A stretch of DNA of 64,000 nucleotides from Botryllus schlosseri. Taxonomy: Eukaryota. The position numbers and the translations under genes are program-made. Positions within the stretch are counted from its first letter, which is position 1, and every line of letters begins with the position of its first letter. The DNA lies in assembly GCA_051294905.1 (NCBI GenBank), contig CM119376.1, positions 18,414,001 through 18,478,000 on the forward strand, written 5' to 3'. The notes below the pieces were generated by a model that was given only the letters and a program-made list of their open reading frames with translations, was not told the DNA's origin and made no database searches. Of this stretch, positions 1 to 25,100 are shown in pieces.

Positions 1-1067
1 GCTGTCAAAATCCCCCGCAACTTCGTAAAAGTTAGTAACAATTCATAATTTTTGAATGTGAATGTCTGCTGTTAAATAACGTGAATTCAGAGAATAGTAA
101 TAGCATCTTGGAAAATGCATCGGAGTTCGGGATATATCTATGAAACAAGTGGTTCCAGATCAACTGGAATTTCACGTCGAGCTCCGCCTCCATTTCCGTT
201 AAACCTCGGTAATGGACTCCGGCAAGATCCAAATCTGATATGCTTACCCGTCCAAATTAATGAATAAATTAAAAACTGTTACGCATGGCAACTCACCACA
301 TATATTCATTGGTAGTAGGATTCAAACAAGATATCTGATTCATATATATTCGAATGCATTGAAATATCTCGGACGTAAACTATACGAAGATACGTAATTG
401 TACAAAGACGGAAAAACGTTAGAGAACGAACAGCGTGAAAATATTCCGATATATAACAGTTAAGAAACCATTGCTACGATTAAGCACACACACAGTGACT
501 TTGAAAAATCACAATACTATATTTGGCTTTGGTACGATTAGTAATTAAAAGTATGACCAATCGAATTTCCCGATGTCAGCCTTCAACTAGTAATCAAGAT
601 AAAGAGTGATGAAAACGGTATTAATTCCGTCGTAAAACCATAGCCTTATCCGTGTGTAATGTGTATATCTACCGCACAAATTAAATTTAACTCAATTTAC
701 CATCCAGCTATTCAAAATAGACATATCGAAAACATACGAAAATGGCTTAGACTGGCAGTGCAGATTTCGCCCGAAGGCGGTTAGATAACATACGAGGAAG
801 GGGCTATCAAAGAATATAAGCTTCGAATATTGTGACGTAATGACGAAGCAATGCCGTTTCTCCCACTAAATAACATTTTCTGCATCATTCATTTTTCCTG
901 CCGATCGGATATCCATTATTGACGATTGCGGTGGTCGACATACTCGAAATAGTTTGGATTTAACGCGGTGTCCAACCTCTCAATTCTGTAAGTGTCACTC
1001 TATATCTGTCCCCGAACAGCACTTGCGGCGCTACTTTCAAATACTCGATCCTGAGTCTTAATTTGCG

Positions 1068-1570
1068 TCACACGTAATATTCCTGATCCACGTTACTACC
1101 ATTTTTCCGTTTCGATTTTTTCTTATTGTTACGTAACGTTCCGTTTCTGCTGTTGCTAGCTACCGGCGCGTGGCCGTTAGAATGACACGGAGACGATCTG
1201 TGTCCTTTCCGGTACCTGTTGTTTTGTCTGTGTTTGAACTTGAAAATCGCCCATAAAAGTGTCGCGATCGTCAACACCGCAGCTCCAATGATACCGGCGA
1301 TTACGGCCGTGGTCCCGTTGAAGAATTTTCCGAACATGCTCGTTGCTTTGAGCGTGTCGTCGGCTTTTAAGTTGTCCATCCCCGAGCCGTTGTTTGAAAT
1401 GTTGTTTGCAGCTCGTGTCGTCGGACTGGGGTTTACTAACGAGGGTCGGGTTGTTTTTATCGGTGTAGCAGACGGGGTTGCCTTCGTCGTCAGAATAACA
1501 ACCGATGGTATTTTGGCTCCAGGCGTAATCTGCGATGTTTGACCGTCGCGGAGCATAGCGTTTTCGAGGT
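1068..1570 (-). CDS. NRXN: neurexin terminal exon (stalk, TM helix, cytoplasmic tail, PDZ-binding EYYV)
   Basis: ctctag| phase 1 (alternative aag| at 1585); [34 protein letters not shown]. Confidence 0.95.
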
Positions 1571-4500
1571 CTAGAGTGGTGGTTTCTTCAAGAGAGTGTT
1601 GTTGCCGCCATGGTGCGTTGTGATCATCGTCATCAGGTGTCGACGGGTGTGGATGGGTGGGAAGAGAAGAAGAAAATGATCAAGATCGTAAGCAATGCGT
1701 AAATGAAATGAAGGGTGTGCGAAGAAGCAGTGGAATCTGAGATTTGAGCAGTTTCGTGGGATCGGGAGATGAGTGTAGTGTCAGAGTGAGATGCAGATGG
1801 AGGATAAGAACGACGGTCTCGGCGGCCAGTTGCGAATTAAATACAGACCGTTATTTATCCGCAGTCCGCACCCAACTACCACACGAGCTGCGTATGCCTA
1901 TTTGTAACTGTTGGTCTAACGAGGCTGGAAAATGATCGTCCCTAGACTTGGAGTTTAATTTTTGTATATTTGATACATTCACTAAACATGAAAACATTTT
2001 GATAGACATATAGCAGGTCGATATTTATTGAGTCAATGGTTTCGTAACCACAAGAAAGTACTTTTAAGGATATATTTTTCTTTATAAATAATATAAATAG
2101 GAATTGGTCAGTGCAGTACTACGCGTAAGACATTTCTAACCATATCTATATGGTTATTGAATACAAAGTCTGATTATTAGAAACTTATTCGATAGACATT
2201 GCGTGCCTGCGCCATAGCGGTGTAAGAGGTACTAGATTGTGAACGTTTGCAAAGGTTATAAAAATGTACTGCATAGATTCGGACAGCTTTCGATAATCGA
2301 TTGCGATCATAGATTGAGTTCAACGGAAAAATATCGCAACGCTTGATAATAATAACGTTAGCAAAGTTAGGTAATTTGACTTGCACGTGTAGGATCGGTT
2401 GCCTGACCGCGTCTGAAGAAAGAACAATATGCCTGAGGGTAAATGAGATAGAGAGAGAGAAAGAGATGTAGATTGGCGTAAGAAGAAGGTGGCAGAACAG
2501 AGATGAAGGAAAAGAAAAACAAAGAATCAGTTGCATGCACTATAAAGTTATTACACTGCATATTCGGGTGTGGTCGTGTATATGTATATTGTATAGCCAA
2601 TACCCTATAAGGAGTTACATTTGACTTGAACAAATAACATGTATATTAAAGGGAAGTATTTTTGTAGGTAAGGACATATACTAGATTGCGTACCATTTCC
2701 AGAATCCCAGAGACCTCACAGGATTGTAAGTTCAAACACTTCTATCGGTAACAATGACATCGCTAGTGTAGGTAAGAAGGATGAATCACAGTCTAAATTT
2801 AATATATGTCCCCTGCATTGAGTTCTCCGAGAAATTGGTTTTTCGGGTTGCAAAAAATATGGGAATCACTAGTTACGCGCCAATTACAAGTCACGTGGGA
2901 TGAATAGATTTCAGATTATGATAAAGGCAGTTAAGGTATAGTCACTGTATACAATTATGCCTAGCCTACGTGGAACCAGAGTGCAGGCGTGGATCAGATT
3001 TGGATAGCATGTGATACAGATATATTGCTTTCGTATCAGTACACGCAATTGAATAAATGGCTGTAACAAAAATACTATTGCGTTTTTCATCACGGACATG
3101 TAGCAGGGTGTTGCTTATTTAAGTAGTAAAGCTGTATAATAGGATGATCGTGGATAAAATAAATACCACAGATTCATAAATATATCCCTCCGCCAAAAAG
3201 GAAAACAGTAGGCTACTCACCATTACTCTCGTCACACAACTCTTCATTACAAGCGCTCGCGTTCTAAACGGTCAAAAAAGAAAGTCATTGAGATTCTCTA
3301 CACAAGAAAACTCAAAATCAAAACTCACTCCAATGCTCAAAGACTTCGACGAAGACGTCCTAAATGTCGTCATGGTAACCATAGTGGTAGTGGTTACCGA
3401 GAGAGGTGTGGGGGTTGCGGTTTCCACATACCTGGTGACATCCCCTATTATCTGCACCCTCGGGTCGCCTGCACGAAAATATACTTCTTGAGGCCGACTA
3501 ATCAACTTCGTTGAACCGAAAGTACAGACCGTTGTTGGCAAGAGAAAATACTCTGATGCCACTAAACGAAAATGCAGTCATCATCCCGGCGCATGTGTCA
3601 ATTATTTGCCCATTCGAAGAACTCGCCAGCCGGCCTCCGATTTGGATCCTGGACTTGGAATTGAAGACGGTGTTCTTCTCTTCTAAATTTCGTAGTCGGC
3701 GGATAAATGTCAGATATTGATTGGTTTCACCAATTATAGTAGAGACGTAAAGAAAGGCATGCCAAACAGCTGACAAAGTACTTGCGGTCACAGCAATCAC
3801 ACAAGCATGCTCGACACAGCATACGGTTATGGCTAAGAAAATGGTGATTTTAGTATTAACATGTATTCAGATCGAAGAGATATCATTTTGGCAGGAGAGA
3901 GTAGGCGAAAACGACCAGACGGTATATAGTTGCCAATAGCGGGTTTTGTCGGATCGATACGCTCCACGCATTGTATGTTCAAGATATCCCTGTTGATCCA
4001 TCGTTTATATATAGATAACTAACCTCCGTAGGTTAGTTATCTATAGTTTATATCAAGTTTAATCACGCTATAGTTGGCGAAAGATGTTTTATGATATAGG
4101 TAATAAACAAGTGAATAGATCGAATTATCCATGTCATAGGGCTAATACCGTTGCGGTGTGCGGAAGCAAAACATATTTGTCCCACGTGATTCGATTCTGA
4201 ATCGAGCAATATAGGCTTCGAGTCGATTCGAGGGGTCGAATCTCACTCACAATGACCTCATGAAAGCATTTGATGATTGAGTTAAAATATGTACCTTTTA
4301 TGCGACCAGAAAGAAAATAATGCCGGTCATATACATGATATACATCACATTAAATATTATTCGGAAGCTTTTCGACTATATATACCTATTTCATTGTACA
4401 TGTGACAGTGCCATGGGTTGATCATAACGACTTCGTAGAAACGGCCATTTCTACTAACGTGTGAGTAGCTTTGAACTATATGTTCCTGATGCTATGATAT

Positions 4501-7500
4501 CGCACCAATTGCGAGATTCAAGGGAAACAGTATTGGAACTATAATTATTATGATATAACTCTTCGTGGAAATGGGTCTATAATTTCAGTACGTATTGCAT
4601 AGTACCACTGTAGCGTACAATAGAACCTTGGCCAGTATGGCGTTGAGTAGGGATGGTGTGAAAGGTTCAGGTTCGTGTGAACACGAACCTTTTTGAAGGG
4701 TTCTGTGTGTACGCGAACGTGAACCTCATGACGTCACGTGACGTCATATTGCAAATTCCAGCCCCACATTTCAGTGAAGTGATAGCCTATATTAATGTAC
4801 ACGGACCTAGCGACGACTCGGGCCACCTAATGCCACAATGCTGAAGTACATATTGACGTTTTGAACGTCGCCAAATGTATCAACTGGGGCAATCAAATGA
4901 TATAATATTACCATAAAATCAATATCTTCCGTCGCTTTGCCAACAATTTCGACGAGGACTTGCAAGGGAATATATGCTTACGCCATAACGGTATAGGCCA
5001 GACCGGGCAATGTATTTGGCGTCTGAGTATTGCTACGTTGAAATTGAGCAGGGTGTAAAACGGGTTTCTATACTTGCTACCGACATTACCCCATTAAAAA
5101 GTAATACAGCAGTAGCCAACACCTCAATCGCATGGATTTGGATTTTATGGTACGATTAACATAGAAAGTCAAGATTGATTGACCCCGTGCGCCTGCTAGA
5201 TTTTTTAGCATCACGCAACGATATCAATTTCATTGGTTGATTGAGTAAGCATCATTCGCTGGCTACCTGCATGTAGTGTATTTCACTCTTGATGTTGTGT
5301 GATTGCGAGTCAAGCTCACAACAGAGAGTCACTAAATATTCACAACGGAAAGCTGGATATTTCGAGCAAACTTTTGCAATAAAGCAGGTAAAATTTTTCA
5401 GATTGTCAAGGTCCATGCTCGATTGGAGTTGATTTTTTTGCTGCCACCCCCATGCATAGAGTGTCCCGCAGTTGAAATGCAAATAATTTCAATCAAAGAT
5501 GCTATAATGAGGTGATAAGTGTAATATATGAAAAGTTTCACAGTACAGAACCTACCAAGGTTCGTTTGTGAACGTGAACCTCTAAATTTCTGACGTTCAC
5601 ACACAGAACGTGAACGTGAACCTCACGTTCACACCATCTCCAGTTGAGAATATGTGCTGTGATGTGGAAGCAAAATGGGTAACGCATCACATATTTTCGA
5701 CGTAATTCCCAACGAAATTGGATTAAGACGGTGGTCTCGTCGAGAAAGTGCAGCAGTGGAGAAAAGTTTGTCAGAAATTTCGCAAAGGGTTAAAAGCCGA
5801 TGACGCGTGATCTCGACACCACAGAAATATATGGAGTGGAATGGTGCCACTCGCTAAAATCTTCACACTTCCAACCCTAATTTGAGACCACATGGTATTT
5901 AGAGAGCGCAGTGCCCCTTTCTCGTAATCAAAGGCGCTCGTGAGACGGGGTCATTTATGCAGATTATACTTTACGTCTGTCGGGGATGTAGCTCAGATGG
6001 TAGAGCGCGCGCTTAGCATGTGCGAGGTACCGTAAATGAATATAACCCCCCCCCCCCCCGACCCACCCTCATCACCAATCACTACCCCTCCCTCCCCCCC
6101 CCCCCCCGAACAGGAAATCCATTAGAAGAGCTTCTTGGAGGTACAGAATTTCAATATACAATTGAATGGTATATTCATGTTGGGGTGGGCCCGGGTGTTT
6201 TCGGCTGGCACTCTCGGGGGTAGTCGTCAGCAACTAGTAGCTTACGATTGCCCCTGGCGGGTGTCGGCCGGGGTGTTCGGGTTCATGTCAGTGTGGATGT
6301 ACTATTTAATTGGAAGTCAATTAGGAGAAAGGACACCCAACCATCCAGTCACCACAAAGTCTATCATTGTCAGAACCATACGGCAACATAATATGAAATA
6401 TTGAAATATGAATTGAAGTCAGGCAATAATAGAGTCACAACCAACCACCCAAAAGTGGGTAGACCTCGTTCAAACCAAAAAATTGGAAAAACCCCAAAAA
6501 CAGGAAAAGTCGATTGACACGCATCAATAGGTTTCGTCCCACAGACACCACAAACCCTGAAAATTTCCAAACATACAGCTAGCGACCACACCCACTTTTT
6601 GCTAAAGATGAACTCATCTACAAAATAGCAAACATCCTTAAACCCAAACCAGTACCGTCCCCAATAGCCGCTTGCCTATTTATTGATTGTCTATTATATA
6701 CTTCACATTTACTTTATTTGAATAAACCACTAAAAGAGGTACCGGGATCGATGCCCGGCATCTCCACTTTATGATGTTATTTCGTAAACTGATAAGTTTT
6801 CCCTTTCCACAACTGTGCTATGTGATATTTGCTAGAATTTTGTTTGTCATGTCGCGTATATTATTTCACTTCGATTTCTTTCATCTAAAATCCTGCTGTC
6901 GAGCCATACTACTGAAAATGTACGGCTTCACGTAACGCCTGGATACTTGGCAGGAATACAAACTTTCGAGATCATTTTCTAGCTTCGAATCAACGCTACC
7001 GCGAGAATGTACCTCTGAAAACATGAGGTTGATTCGAAGTCAGAAATTATCTCGAACTTATGTTCTCCTGTCAAATACGGCTCTGAACAAGTAGACAGGT
7101 CTTACGTAAAGCTCTGCATTATGATTTACATTTCCAGAAATAGCAACATCCATGCAGCAGACAATAACATCTTAAAATCGGCATGCGCAATACGAAGGTT
7201 TAGTATGAAGCGGAAGGGTTAGTAAGCTACATAAATCATAGTTTAGCCGCGCTCTTAAATTTTGACTTCGGCCTGCTTAAAAGTGATACCATAGGAGTTA
7301 TCTCGATCTTCTAGGATACTCATCGCAATATATTATACAGTGGTAAAGCTCGCCGGGAAACCTTGCTTCATAATTCATAAATATAAATGTTTTGCGTACA
7401 ACACAGGCAATATCAATAGTACGAACTATACGATGGTGATGAACTGAACATCAATTCTATACCTCTACTCCTTAACCACCCCTCTGAAGCCATTTGAGCA

Positions 7501-22100: not shown

Positions 22101-25100
22101 TTCACGTGACTTGCAAAGATGTAAGAGTACACACACCTACGCGTGGATTCGATATGAATGATACCGCCAAGTCTACAATAACAGTGTAAGAGAAAAACCG
22201 ACTGTATTGGATCCATAGCGTGGCGTAATTGATTCAGTAAAGGCGCCGGTTAGGGACGTACGGATCAAAGCATCAATCGTGATCGTGATTTATTCATATC
22301 TCCATCACCACACGCCCGGCAGTAATATTATCGCAATTGGTGGGAGTCGCTGCTGATGTGGAGCAAGATATGGTGAAAAGAATCGCGCTGTATCACTATT
22401 TTATGGTGTTGCATGATTTCAGTGATATCACCGGCGTCACAAAGAGTCAGTAACCTCGTTTCACTGAGAATGCATTTCGTGGTTTGCTATCACGCTTCAG
22501 ATACAAGCAACTCCAATTAGTCATATCGAGTATTATTGATAACACTGCACAAAGAGAATGGCAAGGAGCATATACATGATTACATGATTAACCTAAAAAT
22601 AAACCATATATTCATTAATATTTAAACTGGGATTTTCGGGAAGGTGTTGGCGACATATATGGTGAATGTATATAGGATCGTATGTATTTGTCGATCGAAA
22701 GGCCAATGCCTTTGCCCCGATAAAAGGAACTTTTTGTGGCGATGTCGCATCAATCACGGTACATTGTTTTGTCTAATTCGTGACCATTGGCTTGGGGGGG
22801 AGGTTAGCACGAAGCGCCCATTTATCAAGGCACATCGATCAACTATCATCGCATTGGAGTGATAGATATGATCTGCTATGTTATGTTAGTGATGCAGAAG
22901 ATCAGGAGACCTGCACCATCATGGGACTGCGGCGCGAAGGGTGTAGACGGGAATATAACCGCTTCATAAACTTCGCATGACAGTGATGGGAAGGTCATGG
23001 TTTAACCCACCGACACCCAAAGGTTGCATTTCCAATCTGCGATTATTTGCAGAAATTCAATCTTAGTTATTCGGCCGCGATAGAGCTCCAAAAGAAGTAG
23101 TCTACCAAACAGGCTGTCGATATACTATGAATAGAATTCGGTGCAATAGCTTTTTAGACGCCTATCGCGAAATGGCAGCGACCTAATTATTAATGTCATT
23201 CCTCGACATTTTCGTCAATCACCGTTATTTTTCGTGTTAAACTCCCCACCGACGACAGTGACGAGTAAATATACTTGCGCGTTTATTCTCTCGGGATCCA
23301 TTAGTTTGATCAAACGAGAGGTTTGGAAATATCTCAGGGAATTTTGTTCATTTTCGGTATACGCACGGAACATTGATATTAACGTGTTTCCGTGGGCGGA
23401 TGACGCCGCATAGCACTGTACAGTGTACACTGTTCATAGTGTTCACTAGGAAATGCTACAAGTATAAATGTGAACGGGACGAGAATTTTCAACAATGACA
23501 TGGCGTATAGTGGTTCTTGGCCTTTTTTTTCTCCAACGCCCCCTTTCCAAAATTGCCTGGGTACGCCCCCCCCCCTATTTTGCGGACTGTAGTAAAAAAA
23601 AACAATGGGTAAGTGGTCGAAGTCCGGTTTCGGATTGGGACTTCACTATTAGACCACCCGACTAATTAACGGTATAATCGTATGTGCTATTTTCGGGATC
23701 AAATCCAGGTTGTTATAACAGCCATCGGGTAAGGCCTACGGGCTCATAGCATTTGGTTCGATATCGATGTACATATCCCGAATTCTCCTCTGCGATTGGC
23801 AATACGGGGAAGTTAATTGTATTAGGTTTTAGTGCTTTGTGTGACTACTAAATCAACTGAGAATGTGGTAGAGATTTGCTCACATTAAATTTAGTGCTGC
23901 ATTAATCTCTCAACTTTAACGTGAATGGGGGTAACAACACTTAGCAGTATCATCCTTTATGATACGATGAAGAAATATTCTGACGATTTAATTTTGTAGC
24001 TCTCGAATACAAGTATATTTAGTTAATCATTTTGGCCAAAAAGCTTTAAAACATCTTTAATGTACAAAGGGCATCACTCTCGAAAGTTGTACAGTACAGT
24101 GCCTTTTCGATTTCGACACGCAGTGCGCTGCAGGATACAATACCTGGTTCAAAACATCTTGAGGAAAATAACGACCAGTTTATCATTATTTTCATCATTT
24201 CAAAACACCACAAAACTGCGATATAATGAAAAGATAGGAAGGTGTCGAAACAACTTCGAGTAGCCAGCGTGACGGGAGTGTTTTAACGGGGGATTGGCAA
24301 TCCAAAAGTACGCCTAACTCATTTTACATGAATAAAAATGAACCACTGCATTCATAGAAACATCGTCGGTGGATATTTCGAGATGAGCGCAACGAAAAAC
24401 GTTGTGATTTGATAGATTTTGTCGAATGTTAGTTTGCAATGAGAACTCGGGGATATATACACCTATTGTTCTACTATTTAATCATATATCCTTACCCCAC
24501 CATCTACTGCGAGGCCATTTTTCTTCAGCGTCCCCTATTTCGCCCCCGAGCGTTTTCGCCCCCTTCAAAATCCAAATCGCCCCCTGGAGGGGCGCTGGAG
24601 ACAAGGTTAAGAACCACTGGGCCGTATACCGTCTGACGTGATAAACGGATATGACGCCACAAAGTCGAATACACAACATATGCGGGTACCTCACTGCACG
24701 CACCCACACGCTCGCATAAGTACAGAATTTCAAATGTTATACATATTGCTCCTTCATCCCGTAAAGGAGTGGTTGACATATCCAAGCCACCAATCACATT
24801 GTCATGTATTTATAACGCATATTCCACTGTGGATTACATTCAAAATGAGGCGGATTGTCATCAAGTATAAGATATATCAGAAGTAACTCAATCGCAGACA
24901 GAAACTGTCACATGCAGCCAGGAAGGCGAAATTGCGAAGACTCACTGCGTCTGTACTTGAATGGATATTATATTTCGCAGCATCGATATTATCTGGTGTA
25001 GACTCACCGCAGCAGACTGAAACACGACCGCAACGCAGCGGGCAACGTTGCAGCTACATTCAGATTTCGAGATAAAATTACGGAGATGACACTTTGGCGA

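Follow-up and report, generated by a model that had tools for sequence, protein, structure and literature searches.

An alternative exon in the last intron of a Botryllus schlosseri neurexin gene and its predicted lipid-anchored product

Results

The neurexin gene and its canonical 3' end

The stretch of DNA analysed here comprises 64,000 nucleotides (nt) of Botryllus schlosseri (assembly GCA_051294905.1, contig CM119376.1, positions 18,414,001 to 18,478,000), is called the window below, and carries on its minus strand the 3' half of an alpha-neurexin gene. The subject of this work is an alternative exon in the last intron of this gene, the use of which would exchange the transmembrane (TM) segment and the cytoplasmic tail of the protein for a short C-terminus that resembles a signal for lipid anchoring. 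Laminin-G (Pfam Laminin_G_1/2) and EGF matches were located on minus-strand exons from 8298 to 29909, and in a tblastn comparison residues 305-1639 of the Ciona neurexin gave collinear matches from 63555 down to 1071.

Three runs of RNA contigs (Logan contigs; X1, X3 and X4, from three studies) and one run of raw reads (X20) were aligned to positions 1-6000. The exon at the end of the domain LNS6 (3530..3682, minus strand) shows 44% identity to Ciona residues 1294-1359, lies within contigs 3529-3684 and is followed by a donor GT at 3529-3528. The joint 3467<->3529, recovered in two of the three contig runs, connects it to an exon coding for the Thr-rich stalk (3329..3468, minus strand, 33 residues listed), which ends in phase 0. 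The next joint, 3263<->3329, was present in all three contig runs (X3, X1 and X4) and leads to a Cys-loop exon of 43 nt (3221..3263, minus strand); according to the RNA joints and the translation this exon codes for 14 residues plus one base (G), and leaves phase 1. In the vertebrate gene exon 23 would likewise be the Cys-loop exon and end just after the Cys loop. The donor of the Cys-loop exon, GTGAGT at 3220-3215, is common to the canonical and to the alternative splice described below.

The canonical terminal exon (1068..1585, minus strand) is defined by the joints, by contig 357-1586 and by its translation, and encodes the remainder of the stalk, the TM segment and a cytoplasmic tail ending in QEYYV, with the stop codon at 1070-1068; the same contig extends the canonical 3' untranslated region (UTR) to at least 357. 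The spliced exons, translated across RNA-supported junctions, display the layout of a neurexin, in which a Thr-rich stalk and a Cys loop are followed by one TM segment and by a short cytoplasmic tail with the PDZ-binding EYYV at its end.

Two canonical acceptors 15 nt apart were observed, one at 1585 (run X1) and one at 1570 (run X4), the choice of which includes or omits the residues ETTTL in the stalk just past the Cys loop. The cytoplasmic tail (1071-1260, minus strand) is strongly divergent from that of Ciona and of the other neurexins compared, the stretch ..YRYRNRDE.SY.. being replaced, and in the C-terminal region only the start of the TM segment and the terminal EYYV are kept.

An alternative exon in the last intron

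Midway in the last intron, which has a length of 1635 nt, a second acceptor is found on the minus strand, formed by a polypyrimidine tract and a terminal CAG (2433..2535, CAG at 2435-2433). Before this acceptor the pyrimidine content is 80% in the last 100 nt and 82.5% in the last 40 nt, as against 45-50% before the canonical acceptors. The coding part of the exon behind it (2320..2432, minus strand) has 113 nt including the stop codon TGA at 2322-2320; entered in the phase left by the Cys-loop exon it is translated to a tail of 37 residues, and the in-frame stop, 37 codons past the junction, precedes the TM-coding sequence. A putative 3' UTR (2012..2319, minus strand) follows, with the hexamer AATAAA at 2029-2024, that is 291 nt downstream of the stop, and a contig of run X1 (2012-2388) stops 12 nt past this hexamer. 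The acceptor and its tract, the phase of the Cys-loop exon, the 37-residue tail with its stop and the AATAAA had all been described in a first-pass annotation made from the letters of the window, and each of them was found at the position given there.

The same annotation had predicted the junction 3221->2432, and this junction was recovered from the RNA contigs of two independent studies of different years, in run X1 with a depth of 5.2 and a side of 31 letters, and in run X4 with a depth of 3.52 and a side of 28 letters. The joint is listed as 2431<->3220 with a cut of +1, equivalent to 2432<->3221; read on the plus strand its ends are CT..AC, corresponding to GT..AG on the minus strand. The corresponding canonical joints were 1585<->3221 in X1 (depth 7.08) and 1570<->3221 in X4 (depth 8.97). 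When the k-mer depths of alternative and canonical junction contigs are added, 28-42% of the sum belongs to the alternative junction in these two studies. Since the donor is shared with the canonical splice, the ends are GT..AG and the junction recurs in two studies, it is very unlikely that the junction is an artefact at the DNA level or stems from a chimeric contig. The junction 3221->2432 is real beyond reasonable doubt, and we are nearly as sure that the isoform to which it belongs has no TM segment.

Of the words sampled from 2040-2440, public RNA runs of the same organism contain 47-82%. The alternative region is covered better than the canonical exon in study P2 (X3, X7-X9), and in runs X7-X9 43-64% of the contained words of 1000-3600 fall in 2040-2440; this better coverage would fit a 3' end of its own for the alternative transcript. 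No junction by which the alternative exon would be spliced on to the acceptors 1585 or 1570 was seen in the three RNA runs, the contigs of which can miss rare junctions. Whatever the 3' end, the stop at 2322-2320 fixes the same protein. Among the 111 coding bases, single nucleotide polymorphisms were found at 2326 and 2355, both synonymous, and at 2332, where I is changed to M; indels or stops were not seen in the RNA contigs. A repeat origin was also looked for, and no further copy of this intron was found within the window.

It had also been suggested that skipping of the 43-nt Cys-loop exon would give the same tail. The frame agrees with this suggestion, as a CAG at 2415-2413 (exon start 2412) joins the same frame from the phase-0 end at 3329, but the RNA contigs contained no junction 3329->2412.

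Some further observations were made in this region. A second phase-1 frame stands behind an AG (exon start 1736) and codes for 34 residues followed by a stop (1633-1736, minus strand); a junction 3221->1736 was not seen in the three RNA runs. One X1 contig matches from 2065 upward and continues into 255 letters absent from the window, with no splice consensus at the break, which could be a structural variant or the mark of a chimeric contig. For an unspliced contig of run X3, described in the Discussion, a gamma-neurexin-like internal start was considered and rejected, since upstream of 1585 the TM frame has no Met that is followed by a signal peptide. In the region 4200-5800 word depths of hundreds to thousands were found in all RNA runs, together with many variant letters and odd joints, and this region looks like expressed repeats or transposon fragments within a neurexin intron.

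The alternative tail compared with a GPI signal

The tail encoded by the alternative exon contains the small residues S-G-N-R-S, continues with a polar spacer of 6-8 residues (YTCKSN(Y..)) and closes with an uncharged hydrophobic end of 16 residues. This order of elements was compared with a crude rule for glycosylphosphatidylinositol (GPI) signals, modelled on their classical description, by which the omega residue is S, N, D, G, A or C, omega+2 is G, A, S or T, the polar spacer has 5-10 residues, and the uncharged hydrophobic C-terminal run has at least 12 residues with a mean Kyte-Doolittle value of at least 1.6. The tail satisfies this crude rule, the best candidate omega being N-R-S, with a spacer of 6-9 and a hydrophobic run of 14-17 residues.

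Stop-terminated frames that satisfy the rule are rare in the window (0.7%, or 0.3-2.9% with stricter or looser settings), and in a second-order Markov simulation of this intron their share was 1.2%. Because the acceptor was picked by the RNA data and not by the tail, about 1% is the relevant chance figure, although the candidate tail had already been seen when the rule was drawn up, which has to be kept in mind. On the layout of its tail the isoform of the window is predicted, with moderate confidence, to be GPI-anchored.

Ciona and other tunicate neurexins

When the LNS6 exon was searched by HMMER among 1.84 billion representatives, no protein of this species and only distant relatives were obtained. 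The neurexin-3-like protein of Phallusia mammillata was the match that shares the stalk, Cys-loop and C-terminal motifs of the window, and neurexin-1a of Ciona intestinalis was found in a follow-up search. When the tblastn scores against the window were summed, Ciona ranked first (1048 bits; 605-812 for the others). The ascidian neurexins of Ciona and Phallusia are the closest among those compared, but with an identity of about 42% the animal stands far from Ciona. The lineage-typical motifs shared with Ciona are ..GMM..F.F..(V/I)RVF.LA..GDP.VQ.IGDV, TTTM.T.TTF in the stalk, TTAVIAGI at the start of the TM segment and EYYV at the end.

The 90% cluster of the Ciona protein has 16 sequences, and 12 of the 15 listed end in the TM/EYYV tail, the others being P0043, F6WKV2 and the N-terminal fragment P0032. 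A different C-terminus is given by the computed RefSeq model "neurexin-3 isoform X13" (XP_026689399.1, 1464 aa), which reads ..GCEDEDLCLNSS|AYKYWAMTPCNSAKQKTLYSNIPLMLWTCMLILVNNTV and then stops, the divergence lying directly after the Cys-loop exon. In the Ciona assembly (L002; GCA_018327825.2) a single surplus base, at 24132, closes the Cys-loop exon, in phase 1. The start of the alternative exon, at 24327, is preceded by a tract rich in C/T and lies within a last intron of 682 nt whose canonical acceptor is at 24815. From acceptor to stop there are 113 nt (24327-24439), the same as in the window, and the chance that a random AG is followed by an open frame of 35-37 codons is about 2%. Compared with the X13 protein, the assembly has the changes L>I and C>Y and an in-frame indel of 3 nt, and the frame is therefore kept between the Ciona alleles. 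The RefSeq allele also satisfies the crude GPI rule, with omega N-S-A or C-N-S.

The two tails are layered alike: behind an aromatic/hydrophobic patch, Thr occupies position 8 and small residues occupy positions 10-14, and these are followed by a polar spacer whose last residue is N and by a hydrophobic run. Isoform X13 resembles the isoform of the window in the point of divergence after the Cys-loop exon (..CEDEDLCLNSS|), in the use of the last intron, in the pyrimidine tract, in phase 1 and in a tail of 37-38 residues with CNSA. It differs in the residues themselves, about 3 of 37 being identical, in a hydrophobic run of 13 that is followed by NNTV, and in the length of the intron (682 nt in Ciona and 1635 nt in the window). 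The exon boundary at which the Ciona isoform exchanges its tail is the same as in the window, and so are phase, length and layout; this is the frame conservation in a relative on which the first-pass annotation had let its proposal depend. We consider it likely that the arrangement is conserved within ascidians.

The UniProt model F6WKV2 of Ciona ends in a read-through of the donor of the Cys-loop exon (..LNSSGKHIFILPHFMI). For a third species, the TARA and Logan contigs with the LNS6 exon (L003-L005) stop short of the stalk and Cys loop, and relatives were not found in two metagenome scans. A polyadenylated mRNA from a marine metatranscriptome (JGI 3300018975, L001:36-995) encodes a signal peptide, one LNS domain (LNS6) and a TTT-rich stalk of the tunicate type, and stops at NPGCDTQHV inside the Cys loop; it represents a beta-like, TM-less, soluble neurexin of a tunicate-like animal. 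Soluble or short neurexins, to which this mRNA and the proposed secreted NRXN3 variants belong, are similar to the isoform of the window in that they end in the stalk/Cys-loop region and have neither TM segment nor cytoplasmic tail, but their C-terminus is polar (..NPGCDTQHV in L001), whereas the tail of the window is strongly hydrophobic.

Discussion

A tail swap at the last intron

In this article we mapped an exon in the last intron of the Botryllus neurexin gene, which is a real alternative exon, probably conserved in ascidians, that gives a TM-less neurexin, and this neurexin is most likely GPI-anchored. A regulated swap of the tail yielding a GPI-anchored neurexin is the explanation that we favour, and we regard it as reasonably, not strongly, probable. 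After the Cys-loop exon the pre-mRNA has the choice between the weak acceptors 1585/1570 and the strong intronic acceptor (exon start 2432), and regulation might be achieved by competition between the strong and the weak acceptors. The alternative choice adds 37 residues and a stop, so that all LNS/EGF domains, the stalk and the Cys loop are retained, and the TM helix and the PDZ-binding tail are lost; the alternative isoform may also have its own 3' end. At the new C-terminus, cleavage and GPI addition by the transamidase could follow. The product would be a lipid-anchored neurexin, able to bind extracellular partners without signalling through a tail, as in the case of mouse NRXN3 AS5+/exon 24.

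The first-pass annotation had gone as far as to propose a GPI-anchored neurexin at this place. This proposal is partly supported. None of the three outcomes that the annotation had named as refuting it was obtained, as junction RNA exists, the tail agrees with the crude GPI rule and the frame has its parallel in Ciona, but anchoring is still a prediction, and a hydrophobic patch, ILFFL, stands just upstream of the candidate omega, which is atypical for the linker of a GPI protein.

This patch is one of several observations that weigh against a lipid-anchored product of a regulated exon. The other Ciona allele narrowly misses the GPI rule on mean hydrophobicity. No similarity was detected between the tails of the window and Ciona, the alignment scores being below those of shuffles, and the correlation of their hydropathy profiles is weak (r=0.48, p about 0.1); similarity of these two tails to the mouse tail is not evident either in the first 23 mouse residues, compared by eye. 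In a collection of 5.8 billion proteins no fragment with the stalk or with the Ciona tail was found. On the side of the RNA, the raw-read run X20 has almost no reads on the gene, so the support for the junction is expressed as contig depth and not as read counts, and the contigs carry no strand or tissue information. Furthermore, a contig of X3 (1642-2662, depth 6.5) is unspliced and crosses the acceptor, the canonical exon being barely covered in this run, X1 and X4 also cover the intron unspliced at 1543-1941, and contigs are found over 1543-2012 as well; part of the RNA signal is therefore unspliced.

Alternative explanations

It is conceivable that the exon is functional and its product is not GPI-anchored. 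The hydrophobic end might instead serve as a short membrane anchor, of which a single residue would lie on the cytoplasmic side, or the protein might leave the cell as a soluble ectodomain by secretion or shedding. The junction and the Ciona parallel also fit such a product, and the soluble mRNA L001 demonstrates that plainly soluble TM-less neurexins exist in the tunicate-like group. The position of ILFFL upstream of omega speaks in the same direction, as does the Ciona tail, which ends in the polar NNTV after just 13 hydrophobic residues. Nevertheless, a hydrophobic run of 16 residues in the window, or 13 in Ciona, is short for a stable TM helix, an uncleaved hydrophobic C-terminus usually causes retention in the endoplasmic reticulum and not secretion, and a cluster of small residues stands at the right distance in the window, in Ciona and in the mouse. 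We hold a non-GPI product of this kind to be rather unlikely.

Unproductive splicing has to be weighed as well. If the acceptor were a strong cryptic one, or the exon a "poison" exon that lowers the amount of full-length neurexin, the GPI-like layout would be a by-product of a T-rich intron. In two studies the junction has a share of 28-42% in the combined depth, which does not favour this possibility, and neither does the chance rate of about 1% for such a layout; additionally, Ciona keeps the phase and the 113 nt between acceptor and stop, and the indel between its alleles is in frame, none of which would be needed by a poison exon. For these reasons unproductive splicing appears improbable, in spite of the premature stop that the exon introduces, the Leu/Phe/Ser-rich peptides to which T-rich sequence is translated, the unspliced RNA around the exon in the contigs described above and the tails without sequence conservation between species. 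It should be added that mouse exon 24 was itself once thought to be a target of nonsense-mediated decay (NMD) (PMC9275415).

Finally, the junction could have been mimicked by genomic DNA in the RNA libraries, by a chimeric contig or by a deletion allele at the DNA level. The support consists of assembled contigs with short sides (28-31 letters) and not of counted reads, DNA can occur in RNA libraries, and the X1 contig that breaks at 2065 runs into sequence absent from the window. An artefact would nevertheless have had to place its break exactly at the canonical donor on one side and, on the other, at a CAG preceded by a long pyrimidine tract, to show GT..AG ends and to recur in two studies of different years, in an intron that is non-repetitive within the window; we therefore regard it as highly improbable.

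Significance

An RNA-supported tail-swap exon in an ascidian, mirrored in Ciona and placed at what would be the corresponding point of the gene, bears on two general statements about neurexins. In reviews the stop-containing exon at splice site 5 (SS5) was called unique to Nrxn3 (PMC9812575), and extensive neurexin splicing was called exclusive to vertebrates (PMC12665717); our results argue against both. They move a tail switch of the NRXN3 type beyond the vertebrates and into an experimentally simple chordate. The question why a synaptic organiser needs a form without a cytoplasmic tail becomes testable in a simple chordate that has one neurexin gene and whose larval connectome is mapped, and the very divergent tails offer a natural comparison set for what a neurexin GPI signal requires. 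Literature searches gave no description of a TM-less or GPI-anchored tunicate neurexin, nor of Ciona isoform X13, which is not proof of absence.

Comparison with vertebrate NRXN3

Mouse Nrxn3 mRNAs with exon 24 (AS5+/SS5+) have a stop before the TM exon, and their GPI-anchored products act at dendritic inhibitory synapses (PMC9275415; PMC9812575). These isoforms were at first taken for secreted forms or for NMD targets, and proof of the anchor then came from labelling with 3H-ethanolamine and from a reporter to which the exon-24 peptide had been transferred (Hauser et al. 2022, PMC9275415). In the frame fixed by the hemagglutinin (HA) tags of the published knock-in donor (PMC9275415), a codon is completed by the first two bases of mouse exon 24, and ARSSNAARSLRAALTWTWRLTYT is the beginning of the exon.

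The acceptor phase is therefore 1 in mouse exon 24, as it is in the window and in Ciona, where the exon occupies the same intron. The likeness between the Botryllus gene and mouse or human NRXN3 AS5+ extends to an alternative exon placed before the TM exon, an in-frame stop, a cluster of small residues followed by a hydrophobic stretch and, in the mouse, a TM exon downstream in the same transcription unit. On the other hand, the exon of the mouse opens with its small residues (ARSSNAA), whereas those of the window follow a hydrophobic/aromatic patch of 8 residues. Mouse exon 24 is an internal cassette, spliced to acceptor 25a, by which the TM exon becomes part of a long 3' UTR, whereas in the window no downstream junction was seen. 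The GPI anchor is proven in the mouse and only predicted for the gene of the window, and the neurexin of the window is the sole one as far as seen, whereas vertebrate NRXN3 is one of three paralogues. For the NRXN3 AS5+ form, see also Ushkaryov and Sudhof (1993).

Tunicates are the sister group of the vertebrates, and this narrows the sense in which the exon is the invertebrate equivalent considered in the first-pass annotation. Since the tails of the window, Ciona and the mouse have no detectable similarity, they do not tell common origin and convergence apart, and it is only tentatively suggested, as a possibility that we find doubtful, that the switch between TM tail and lipid anchor at SS5 is ancestral to tunicates and vertebrates and shares its origin with exon 24. 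If this were true, a tail-less, lipid-anchored neurexin would be more than 500 million years old and would have a conserved role, instead of being a peculiarity of mammalian NRXN3. The single neurexin gene before the duplications would then have possessed an exon-24-like GPI exon in its last intron, which the ascidians and vertebrate NRXN3 would have kept and NRXN1 and NRXN2 would have lost.

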